DNA of 64,000 nucleotides. It comes from Bugula neritina. Lineage: Eukaryota > Animalia > Bryozoa. Location of the stretch: the NCBI GenBank assembly GCA_964035545.1, contig OZ037773.1:6539751-6603750 (forward strand), read 5' to 3'. Of the stretch, positions 3,862-7,821 are shown piece by piece (the first letter of the stretch is position 1; the number at the start of each line of letters is the position of its first letter). The notes beneath the pieces were generated by a model. That model had not been told where the DNA came from. It worked only from the letters and a program-made list of their open reading frames with translations, and did not search any database. Position numbers and translations under genes: made by a program.

Positions 3862-6800
3862 TTATTTACTATCAGTATAATCGCGAAGGTTTACTCGTCT
3901 CCTAGGTATCTCCAACAACATAGTTTCAAGTATCCATGCATCCGTTCTAATACCCTCCACAAAGTCTGTATAGTCAAAGTAACCACGGTTACCCTAGAAG
4001 ACAACAATTTTAGCATTATCTGCATAATGTCTAATATTGCTAATCAGAAACTAATAATATTTGTGCACAATATTGTTTAGATTACACCAAGTCTTTTAAG
4101 AGCTTCAACAAACTTAACAGTAAAGCACATAAAGATGCGATACTTCAGAAATGGTTTTAAACCACTGTTATTTAATAAACCCGTATCAGGGATTTTAGAC
4201 TGGTAAAAATCAAAATATAATACATGTGTGTGTGTGCGTGTGAGTGTGAGTGTGAGTGTGAGTGTGAGTGTGAGTGTGAGTGTGAGTGTGAGTGTGAGTG
4301 TGAGTGTGAGTGTGAGTGTGAGTGTGAGTGTGAGTGTGAGTGTGAGTGTGAGTGTGAGTGTGAGTGTGAGTGTGCGTGTGCGTGTGCGTGTGCGTGTGCG
4401 TGTGCGTGTGCGAGTGCGTGTGCGTGTGCGTGTGAGTGTGCGTGTGAGTGTGCGTGTGAGTGTGAGTGTGAGTGTGAGTGTGAGTGTGAGTGTGTGAGTG
4501 TGTGAGTGTGTGAGTGTAGGTGTGTGTGTGTGTGTGTGTGTGTGTGTGTGTGTGTGTGTGTGTGTGTGTGTGTGTGTGTGTGTGTGTGTGTGTGTGTGTG
4601 TGTGTGTGTGTGTGTGTGTGTGTGTGTGTGTGTGTGTGTGTGTGTGTGTGTGTGTGTGTGTGTGTGTGTGTGTGTGTGTGTGTGTGTGTGTGTGTGTGTG
4701 TGTGTGTGTGTGTGTGTGTGTGTGTGTGTGTGTGTGTGTGTGTGTGTGTGTGTGTGTGTGTGTGTGTGTGTGTGTGTGTGTGTGTGTGTGTGTGTGTGTG
4801 TGTGTGTGTGTGTGTGTGTGTGTGTGTGTGTGTGTGTGTGTGTGTGTGTGTGTGTGTGTGTGTGTGTGTGTGTGTGTGTGTGTGTGTGTGTGTGTGTGTG
4901 TGTGTGTGTGTGTGTGTGTGTGTGTGTGTGTGTGTGTGTGTGTGTGTGTGTGTGTGTGTGTGTGTGTGTGTGTGTGTGTGTGTGTGTGTGTGTGTGTGTG
5001 TGTGTGTGTGTGTGTGTGTGTGTGTGTGTGTGTGTGTGTGTGTGTGTGTGTGTGTGTGTGTGTGTGTGTGTGTGTGTGTGTGTGTGTGTGTGTGTGTGTG
5101 TGTGTGTGTGTGTGTGTGTGTGTGTGTGTGTGTGTGTGTGTGTGTGTGTGTGTGTGTGTGTGTGTGTGTGTGTGTGTGTGTGTGTGTGTGTGTGTGTGTG
5201 TGTGTGTGTGTGTGTGTGTGTGTGTGTGTGTGTGTGTGTGTGTGTGTGTGTGTGTGTGTGTGTGTGTGTGTGTGTGTGTGTGTGTGTGTGTGTGTGTGTG
5301 TGTGTGTGTGTGTGTGTGTGTGTGTGTGTGTGTGTGTGTGTGTGTGTGTGTGTGTGTGTGTGTGTGTGTGTGTGTGTGTGTGTGTGTGTGTGTGTGTGTG
5401 TGTGTGTGTGTGTGTGTGTGTGTGTGTGTGTGTGTAGCTAGCTATTATAGTTACCACAGGTACTACTTAACTTACTGCATCCAATATAGAAAATATATTG
5501 TTAGTTCGAGTGGCTGGAGTATCATATTGATTAGTCAATGATTTCCCAATCAACTCATAGGATGCCCGAAGTACTTTCCTCATATCTGATTTTGTGACAG
5601 CATTGGCTTTCCTGATATCAAAGACTTTAAATGACCCTAAAATGCAATGAACTAACAGGATAACAAAAGTAAAATGGAGCTTTTAAGCTCAACACAAACC
5701 ACGTTTGTAAATTTAAAAACCATACACACCATGGTTTTTTTTATAGGAAAGGATAACTCTATTTTTACTGCAGAAAACTCTAAAAAAACTATAAGCCACA
5801 TTTAAAAGCTTTACTGGTTTTCTCAAGATATTTGAGGTGTACAAGACAAACAAACAAACAATTTGTATACATGCATGCTTTTGCATGGGATAAAAGAGTA
5901 CGTATATACAATAAACACACTTTGCACGTTGTTCATTATAAAATTCCAGCTCAAATATATGAAATCTAGAAGCAAAGTCATTAGCAAAATAATTTTGGTA
6001 ATAATTATTGGGCAGCAGATATCACATCATATTAGCTCTTGTGTATGGCTTGTTATGAACAGCAAAACATAAAACCGGCATATTAGCTATTACAGATGGC
6101 TGAGTATAAACAACAAATTATAAGTTGTAATGGCCTGTCCTTACATTTCAACTGATCAATTAGCTCTCCTGTCTCAGCACTCATGCAAGTAAGGAACTTC
6201 CCAAAACCCATCTTTCCAAATGGCTTGACACCGGCAGCGTTGAAGTACAGTTTAGCGTATTTAGTAGGGTTACCATTTGGATGCTTTATTTGCAAGTGAA
6301 ATACAAAATCCTGTACAAAAGAAACATCACAGCCAAAAGATTGAAAGTTTCAATGCATCAGTTGCATTATAGTTCTACTTGTATATTAATTTAAACATAA
6401 AAATAGCATACATTGATGTGTAATGATATTATGCTGTATATGACTTTCCTTTCATCATAAAATTTTCTTTTTCTTAATGCTTTGAGATGATGATAAATAT
6501 CTCCAAATATTAGATGGTATTAAAGTTGTTTAGTAATTATTCCAAGGGCAGGATTAATGAATTAGCATACCAATATATCAGTAGATATATAGCGAGTCAT
6601 TTCTGGGTATCGCAATTTTAATTTTAAACATTTCTATTTGAGAAAATATGTTTTTTAAAGAGTGTTTTGCAGGAAGTAAATAAACATATAAATATTGTGC
6701 TTTAGAAGCATATGCAATAATATTTTAATTAAATACAGCTTATTTTGCAACTTCAATGAAGTATATGAGTTGGTTATCAAAAATATAATTCAATTTTCAA

Positions 6801-7821
6801 AGTAAAACTTTATTTACTACGTAATAACATTATTTCGGTAATGTTTGCTGTATATTATATGTACTATCAGCTACCTACACTTGCCTTGTATTTTTATTTT
6901 TCTGAGAATTATTTCTTGCTTAACAAAATGTTAATAAATAAATTGCAATTTATGTGTATATTTTGTATAAATTTTGATTTGGGAAGAAATGATTTTCTAA
7001 TTATTTGAGGTACTCACTTCTCTAGTGATATATCCAGATGGAAACCTCTCAAGAAAAAAGCCATGCCTAAAACAAAGGAATCAGTAGTAACACTTGTCAG
7101 TGTTTAGGTTTTACAAGTTTTAGCAAGTTGTTTTTACACTTTTTTGTTTTAAAAACTGTACCAACACTAAACTTTAAATTTTACTAACTGCAATCATCTG
7201 CAGTTCATAAAATCAAAGTGTTATGTTATAAGTTAGTTTGCTCTTTAGTTTGTGACCTTCACCTTCATTAACTTGTAAATTTTAAAACTAATAGGAATTT
7301 AGTTTGAAAATTTGAAAAGTGCATATCCCGTTTAGACATTGCTTAAGTATCTAAAAGAAATTTAAAAAATAAAAGTTACAATATTTGGAACATGCTGCAA
7401 AAAAGTTTTTATATAATTTTATAAATTAAAAATTTAAAGAAATAGTAAGTAAATGGAAGTCAATTTAGATTTTACATGCTATGATTCAACAAGTTTGATC
7501 AATAAAAATATTTGATCGCTTTTGGGTGACTCACCAGTTTAAAACTTCTATGGCGTTATCTGCAAAGAGAAAATTATTTTATACATTAGAAGGATTACAG
7601 CTACCAGTTGCTACAGTTGCTAACTCTCTGATGCACACTCTGCTCAATGCTTTATAGATGAAAAAGCAAATACAACTATAACTGTTAGTGGAGATTAAGT
7701 ACTTACACTGGGTTAGACGCACTAACTTTACGAGTTTCTCTCGAGACAGAGTTGGTGCACCTCTGCTCCTGATAAAACTGCTGCCACTTGAACCTCCACT
7801 TTGGCTGCCTGAATTTCCCAT
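3862..7821 (-). CDS. Divergent neuronal calcium sensor (NCS-1/recoverin/KChIP family)-like protein, copy B, ~215 aa; exons 7821-7707, 7559-7535, 7066-7018, 6310-6145, 5636-5476, 3993-3862
   Basis: Six GT-AG exons join in frame (648 nt): MGNSGSQSGG...KLVRLTQYNAIEVLNWHGFFLERFPSGYITREDFVFHLQIKHPNGNPTKYAKLYFNAAGVKPFGKMGFGKFLTCMSAETGELIDQLKWSFKVFDIRKANAVTKSDMRKVLRASYELIG...DTPATRTNNIFSILDAGNRGYFDYTDFVEGIRTDAWILETM... This is collinear with NCS-1 motifs (WYKGFxxxCPSG, PxGDPTKFA, KLxWAFKLYD, TPEKRVDRIF, EFxEG). Confidence 0.88.
4225..5434. repeat. Compound microsatellite: (GAGTGT)n/(GCGTGT)n followed by ~0.9 kb of pure (GT)n, in intron 5 of NCS copy B
   Basis: Directly visible. Accounts for the TH/VC/CE spurious ORFs. 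Confidence 0.99.

Follow-up and report, generated by a model that had tools for sequence, protein, structure and literature searches.

Neuronal calcium sensor (NCS) proteins are textbook calcium sensors, and NCS-1 (frequenin) is usually single-copy and extremely conserved. Among the S100 proteins, S100A10 (p11) carries loop substitutions that abolish Ca2+ binding, is still conserved and functional, and gives a precedent for an EF-hand adaptor that is permanently 'on'. The gene described here, termed A1, lies on the minus strand (7821..3862) of a 64,000-nucleotide stretch of the genome of the bryozoan Bugula neritina (assembly GCA_964035545.1, contig OZ037773.1, positions 6,539,751 to 6,603,750), referred to below as the window. 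It belongs to an array in which its sister paralogs are named A2-A5 and the further genes B1-B7. With a probability of roughly 0.6, A1 is read as a functional, no longer Ca2+-sensing member of a young, bryozoan-restricted, five-gene tandem clade derived from a sensor of the NCS-1/frequenin type.

Like NCS-1/frequenin, A1 has a collinear layout of four EF-hands in a protein of ~190-220 residues, an MG...S consensus at the N-terminus, an EF1 disabled by P-x-G, and a conserved Trp at each of two exon junctions (2/3 and 4/5). Unlike NCS-1/frequenin, it has no canonical EF-hand, reads Phe-Pro for Cys-Pro in EF1, has an isoelectric point (pI) of ~9.9 rather than ~4.9, and is changed at groove positions; its N-terminus is longer, basic and Ser-rich, and a probable extra exon gives it a basic C-terminus ending in F-x-F. 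It is only ~31% identical to B6, the canonical NCS-1-type gene of the array. The resemblance to S100A10, by analogy, would be that of a protein from a Ca2+-sensor EF-hand family with substituted binding loops; S100A10 itself belongs to an unrelated subfamily with two EF-hands and is dimeric and not myristoylated. Fixed duplications of frequenin are reported to be rare in animals (PMC2837045), whereas the A genes are multi-copy.

Gene structure of A1

When the exons of A1 were joined by script, six exons gave an unbroken open reading frame (ORF) of 648 nucleotides (nt) and 215 residues, and all internal exon boundaries are AG...GT. The sequence-only reading of the window had proposed an intact six-exon ORF collinear with NCS-1; its intactness and its collinearity with NCS-1 in matches to the PDB stood, and most likely a seventh exon has to be added. 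It had also remarked that the ORF track gives fragments only, as the bacterial-style ORF list confirms. The exons, in window coordinates, are:

7707..7821, minus strand: exon 1, with the start codon (7821-7819), MGNSGS and a Gly/Ser-rich basic N-terminus; donor GTAAGT; homologous exon 1 in A2-A5
7535..7559, minus strand: exon 2, a micro-exon of 25 nt, phase 1 to 2; A2-A5, B6 and B7 have an exon of equal size with the same AG/GTGAGT boundaries
7018..7066, minus strand: exon 3, 49 nt, with the EF1 remnant ...ERFPSGYITRE; the 49-nt exon of B6 reads ...KDCPSGNLGKE
6145..6310, minus strand: exon 4, 166 nt, with the EF2 pseudo-loop GVKPFGKMGFGK; PFGK.GF.K is invariant across the five paralogs
5476..5636, minus strand: exon 5, 161 nt, coding for the EF3 pseudo-loop DIRKANAVTKSD, the linker and the start of EF4
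3870..3993, minus strand: exon 6, with the remainder of EF4 (..GNRGYFDYTD) and the C-terminal helices; in the six-exon model it extends to TAA at 3864-3862 (exon 3993-3862)
3751..3776, minus strand: predicted exon 7, coding part, with RRNLRFQF and the stop TAG (3753-3751), followed by conserved sequence resembling a 3' untranslated region

The end of exon 6, AGTAA(A/G)TAA in 5/5 paralogs, is at once a stop codon and a good splice donor (A/GTAAGT or A/GTAAAT, the slash marking the junction). In A1 this donor, A/GTAAAT, lies at 3869 and the exon 7 acceptor, TTTTAG/GAC, at 3777/3776, and both are conserved. In A1-A5 the 84-245 nt between exon 6 and the acceptor are indel-rich and poorly conserved, and a conserved block begins beyond it. 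Splicing to the seventh exon gives C-termini of basic residues plus F-x-F in 5/5 paralogs: RRNLRFQF (A1, A2), RHNFRF (A3), RQNFTF (A4) and RRRFSF (A5). A contig carrying an ortholog of A5 retains the donor, the acceptor and an identical tail (PRRRFSF, then the stop), with 79% identity in intron 6 against 95% in exon 6. Because the splice sites are conserved, the F-x-F ends are shared and the A5 ortholog keeps all three, the seven-exon model is most likely the correct one; the predicted A1 protein then has 221 residues (666 nt) and ends in ...DYTDRRNLRFQF, not SK. The F-x-F-COOH tail of A1-A5 looks like a hydrophobic-x-hydrophobic C-terminal docking motif, which is speculation only.

One DNA contig spans window 6044-6407, including exon 4, without any difference. 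A joint listed from 6072 to 6189 was rejected as splicing: its ends are AA..AA and it enters exon 4, and it is attributed to a variant, to cross-matching with a paralog or to an artefact of the contig. Most of intron 5 is taken up by a repeat, which was read directly:

4220..5436, no strand: (GT)n/(GTGA)n microsatellite, ~1.2 kb

This repeat is nearly pure (GT)n behind a (GTGA)n/(GTGC)n leader, and a comparable CA/GT tract opens intron 5 of A2.

Descent from the NCS family

Searches were made exon by exon or with an exon profile, the spliced protein not being contiguous in the genome. Against the PDB, the top match of exon 4 alone was NCS-1 (E 0.047, residues 56-98) and that of exon 5 alone was again NCS-1 (E 0.0012, residues 104-157), both collinear. 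When the exon 5 sequences of the five paralogs were combined in a profile, it matched Frequenin-2 at E 3e-6 and NCS-1 at 7e-6 (residues 104-157), and all of its PDB matches with E <1e-3 were NCS proteins, including hippocalcin-like protein, neurocalcin, KChIP and calsenilin. Single exons scanned against Pfam remained under the gathering thresholds: exon 5 scored 14.4 bits for EF-hand_6 (cut-off 25) and 13.4 for EF-hand_7 (cut-off 30), and the scan of the other A1 exons gave nothing relevant to the families at issue (PF13405, PF13499). A1 aligns with B6 across the loops without gaps, and the exon sizes of A1-A5 (25, 49, 166 and 161 nt) compare with 25, 49, 169 and 161 nt in B6, with like phases. 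Descent of A1 from the NCS family is supported by these similarities.

The N-terminal myristoylation consensus M-G-x-x-x-S/T is present, as a motif only, in MGNSGS (A1), MGNLGS (A2-A4) and MGTTSS (A5). The sequence-only reading was right in this respect, as MGNSGS, read directly from the sequence, fits PROSITE PS00008, G-{EDRKHPFYW}-x(2)-[STAGCN]-{P}. A Walker-A-like interpretation of G-K-M-G-F-G-K-F was rejected, no Ser or Thr following the Lys.

State of the EF-hand loops

The loops of A1 are as the sequence-only reading had given them, namely EF1 ERFPSGYITRED, EF2 (A)GVKPFGKMGFGK(F), EF3 DIRKANAVTKSD and EF4 DAGNRGYFDYTD. Ligand positions 1, 3, 5, 9 and 12 were tabulated from an alignment of the family with B6 and database NCS proteins:

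EF2 of A1: ligands G, K, F, G, K; oxygen donors at 0/5 positions, as in A2-A5; the structural Gly6 and a hydrophobic residue at position 8 retained
EF3 of A1: ligands D, R, A, T, D; oxygen donors at 3/5 positions; Gly6 lost
EF4 of A1: ligands D, G, R, D, D; oxygen donors at 3/5 positions; position 5 is Arg throughout the clade

EF1 of A1 reads FPSG, with Pro and Gly retained and the hallmark Cys replaced by Phe; B6 has CPSG, and the site is equally dead. In EF3 of A1-A5, position 3 (Y) is Arg or Ser and position 5 (Z) is Ala, Val or Ser, and in EF4 position 5 (Z) is Arg in all five paralogs and in the orthologs of a sibling taxon described below. Positive charges now occupy former Ca2+ positions in the loops of A1. 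PROSITE PS00018 gave 0 matches in each of A1-A5 and in B7 against 3 in B6, so that the absence of a Ca-site pattern expected by the sequence-only reading was observed. By this pattern and by the ligand table, A1-A5 appear to lack the two or three canonical EF-hands (among EF2-EF4) of an NCS protein, and A1 is probably insensitive to Ca2+. The claim that all four loops had lost their Ca2+ ligands is exact for EF2 only, because EF3 and EF4, although non-canonical, keep three of five donors each.

In the A4 ortholog on one sibling-taxon contig (JGI contig L021), the EF3 pseudo-loop has Tyr in place of its first Asp (FYISKANAVTRSD), a further ligand-type loss in a constrained gene.

Constraint on the pseudo-loops and orthologs in a sibling taxon

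Identity among A1-A5 is 0.76-0.83 in the pseudo-loops of EF2-EF4 against 0.62 in the rest of the core. The ratio of nonsynonymous to synonymous differences per site (pN/pS) in the core is 0.3-0.6 between paralogs, all pairs being significantly <1, and that of A1 against A3, A4 and A5 is 0.47-0.63 (p < 0.001).

Exon-sized ORFs came up in a word search and in a full hidden Markov model (HMM) search, on JGI contigs with AY690838, the accession of the Bugula neritina mitochondrial genome, in their names. They share 78-87% identity with A3, A4 and A5, of which they are the orthologs in a sibling taxon, and the pseudo-loops are preserved in them. Their exons are usually closer to those of the paralogs than are the flanking introns (94% and 92% against 80% for A5); intron 4 of A4 is as similar as the exons. 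Ortholog pN/pS was 0.16 for A5, 0.15 for A4 and 0.11 for A3, or 0.14 when pooled over 269 codons (Fisher p = 5e-17). The comparison with orthologs by which the sequence-only reading was to be judged therefore came out as it had anticipated for the three sister paralogs A3-A5, for which orthologs were recovered. Because ortholog pN/pS is 0.14 for these genes and the loops are better conserved than the core, the view that the dead loops are a maintained state and not decay is supported. Two A5-like contigs of one JGI sample (L020 and L024) are 96% identical and may be haplotypes, strains or very recent copies.

Charge, N-terminus and groove

The predicted proteins of A1-A5 have a pI of 9.7-10.1 (9.9 for A1) and a net charge of +9 to +15, compared with a pI of 4.9 for B6 and 5.4 for B7. 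Their N-termini are basic and rich in Gly and Ser, and are expanded in A4 and A5 to ~74 Ser/Arg-rich residues. In the helix after EF1, alignment shows I-Y..I-F of B6 replaced by H-L..K-H in A1, at positions that line the hydrophobic groove of NCS-1. The statement that the groove residues are kept therefore needs qualification: two Trp and several Phe are preserved in A1, and the I/Y/F positions after EF1 are now H, L or K. It had further been proposed that A1 could act as a dominant-negative regulator of Kv4, GRK, PI4K or cyclase targets. This was not upheld, as the groove helix is remodelled and the charge has gone from acidic to basic (pI 9.9 against 4.9); with both altered, competition for the canonical NCS targets is unlikely, and A1 probably binds other partners.

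Tandem array and phylogeny

A six-frame search of the B. neritina genome (216 Mb) with exon 5 found 12 related exons on one contig (C9), spanning ~65 kb, and a search with the canonical exon found just two more NCS-type loci outside the array. With tblastn of the A1 model over 82 kb, A1-A5 were placed on the minus strand and the more divergent B1-B7 mostly on the plus strand. Full models of A1-A5 are intact in 5/5 cases, with exons of 25, 49, 166 and 161 nt, GT/AG boundaries and a start of MGN(S/L)GS or MGTTSS. The neighbouring genes are:

Window 1310..2467, minus strand: A2 exons 1-3 (2467-2368, 1880-1856 and 1358-1310), the rest lying before the window start; whole gene C9 6537249-6542217
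C9 6504030-6508701: B6, canonical NCS-1-type gene, with CPSG in EF1 and three PROSITE EF-hands; ~35 kb from A1
C9 6512189-6514975, plus strand: B7, degenerate NCS-like gene, with no PROSITE EF-hand, FPAG in EF1 and pI 5.4
C9 6480000-6503400: B1-B5, divergent NCS-like genes forming their own clade, with EF loops from acid-rich and canonical-looking to altered

In a maximum-likelihood tree, which holds B1-B5 in part (exons 3 and 6 of B2 and B4 and exons 1-3 of B1-B5 were not confidently placed), A1-A5 are monophyletic (95/97) with B7 as their sister (97/96), and the stem branches are long (0.65 and 0.86). B6 is placed on a short branch amid external NCS proteins, and one of its exons has NCS-1 as its top PDB match (~1e-21). 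B7 resembles the A clade in having no PS00018 match and differs from it in being acidic and in not having the A-clade loop sequences; as it is a degenerate but acidic sister, loss of the Ca2+ sites may predate the reversal of charge. B1-B5 differ from the A clade in carrying an acid-rich loop in EF2, in EF3 or in both, as judged by eye from exon translations; an example of an altered loop in this group is EF3 of B3, NVERNNCITEEN. The array contains a graded series from canonical to dead EF loops.

A2 has a mosaic structure: exons 1-2 are the same as those of A3, exons 3, 4 and 6 hardly differ from those of A1, and the C-terminus is that of A1. Such a combination of A3-like and A1-like exons indicates gene conversion or unequal crossing-over within the array. 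The locus is a clear case of rapid neofunctionalisation through tandem duplication with gene conversion. Intron 3 of A2 is ~2 kb long against 707 nt in A1, and the intron sequence shared between them breaks at about window 740 (1-740, minus strand); the unrelated sequence is possibly an insertion or a mobile element.

Distribution in databases and literature

An exhaustive HMMER search with the exon-5 profile, run over 1.84 billion representative proteins, produced 23 matches at E <=1e-3. The degenerate EF3 was found in only three of these, all of them bryozoan fragments, and every other match inspected had a canonical EF3. Word-index protein searches returned exon-sized JGI fragments only and no full-length annotated protein. 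Scans of metagenome contigs with alignments of exons 4 and 5 gave no matches; records very near the source genome may be excluded from these scans, and the empty result is for this reason not evidence of absence. Literature searches on NCS proteins in bryozoans found nothing. Partial loss of sites also occurs outside the bryozoan array, in a database protein of 193 residues (P0011) with a myristoylation motif: as in A1, EF2 and EF4 are degenerate, EF2 of P0011 bearing an insertion, and unlike A1 it has a canonical EF3.

Alternative explanations

That A1 is a chance chain of ORFs or an annotation artefact is suggested by the fragmentary bacterial-style ORF list and by the single-exon Pfam scores below threshold. 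It is effectively refuted by six or seven in-frame exons with consensus splice sites, by a structure and synonymous-biased divergence shared among five paralogs and sibling-taxon orthologs, and by the collinear NCS-1 similarity of separate exons. A1 is a real and probably functional derivative of the NCS family, and several observations nevertheless count against the further view that it has given up Ca2+ sensing and is itself maintained. EF3 and EF4 of A1 retain Asp at positions 1 and 12 and oxygen donors at 3/5 positions, which leaves room for weak or Mg2+-type binding, and the locked conformation discussed below is inferred purely by analogy. NCS-1 is usually far more constrained than the paralog pN/pS of 0.3-0.6. 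Core pN/pS of A1 against A2 is 0.32 (p = 0.038) on little divergence, and exon 5 has several A1-specific amino-acid changes; because A1 and A2 differ so little, constraint on A1 alone is weakly shown. The sibling-taxon JGI fragments yielded no ortholog of either A1 or A2. Finally, a search of sequencing runs for RNA over the A1 locus listed a sole run, which is DNA because its contigs cross introns and show no splice joints; all splice junctions of A1 are consequently predicted from consensus sites and conservation, and its expression is likewise a prediction.

These points lend some weight to two other explanations. A1 might still bind cations, with EF3 and/or EF4 as low-affinity Ca2+/Mg2+ sites of a sensor that responds to high Ca2+ or to Mg2+. 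EF3 retains D1, T9 and D12 (plus S3 in A2-A4), EF4 retains D1, D9, D12 and Gly6, Asp at EF-hand position 12 accompanies binding of smaller ions or weaker binding, and conservation of the pseudo-loops is what would be expected if they were still doing something. Against this, the invariant Arg at position 5 of EF4 and the Arg/Lys crowding of EF3 put positive charge in the place of the cation, EF2 is without any ligand and PS00018 has no match, and residual binding is considered rather unlikely. A different possibility is that, within a functional family, A1 arose only very recently as a redundant duplicate of A2 and is under relaxed constraint, perhaps silent or becoming a pseudogene. Exons 3, 4, 6 and 7 of the two are near-identical (core dS ~0.05, dS being synonymous divergence), exons 1-2 of A1 are private and divergent, exon 5 has four private amino-acid changes, and the missing A1/A2 orthologs and RNA fit such a history. 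On the other hand, there are 0 stops, frameshifts or splice-site losses across the 666 nt of A1, its myristoylation motif is retained, its 5' flank is conserved with the paralogs, and its specific changes (A to S, I to V, L to I, S to R) are conservative. This intact structure and the mostly conservative private changes are the evidence for maintenance that comes from A1 alone, and a redundant copy under relaxed constraint is considered rather unlikely.

Proposed role and significance

On the preferred reading, that A1 belongs to a functional clade no longer sensing Ca2+, the A proteins would no longer respond to physiological Ca2+ and would hold one fixed conformation, as S100A10 does among the S100 proteins. 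The myristoyl group and the basic, Ser-rich N-terminus would anchor A1 to membranes constitutively, and partners would be bound through the remodelled groove and the C-terminal tail. Locked, anchored and remodelled in this way, A1 would act as a Ca2+-independent adaptor or regulator and not as a sensor. A bolder proposal, which is doubtful at present, is that the A clade is a new class of the NCS fold in which the Ca2+-myristoyl switch has been exchanged for a charge-based one, giving a Ca2+-independent signalling scaffold that would have arisen from a calcium sensor within one animal phylum. Phosphorylation could then release the Ser/Arg-rich basic N-terminus, as in a myristoyl-electrostatic switch, the basic residues in the former Ca2+ sites would fix the fold in one state, and the hydrophobic-x-hydrophobic tail could be a docking motif or an intramolecular plug of the groove.

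What has been found, in a poorly studied phylum, is a 12-gene array around a canonical sensor, with one clade in which the standard Ca2+ sites are gone, the net charge is reversed and purifying selection persists. If the A proteins are indeed insensitive to Ca2+, they would supply naturally 'locked' NCS scaffolds for structural work, and the clade would be a natural experiment on the NCS fold without calcium, in which a sensor became a constitutive adaptor in parallel to S100A10.

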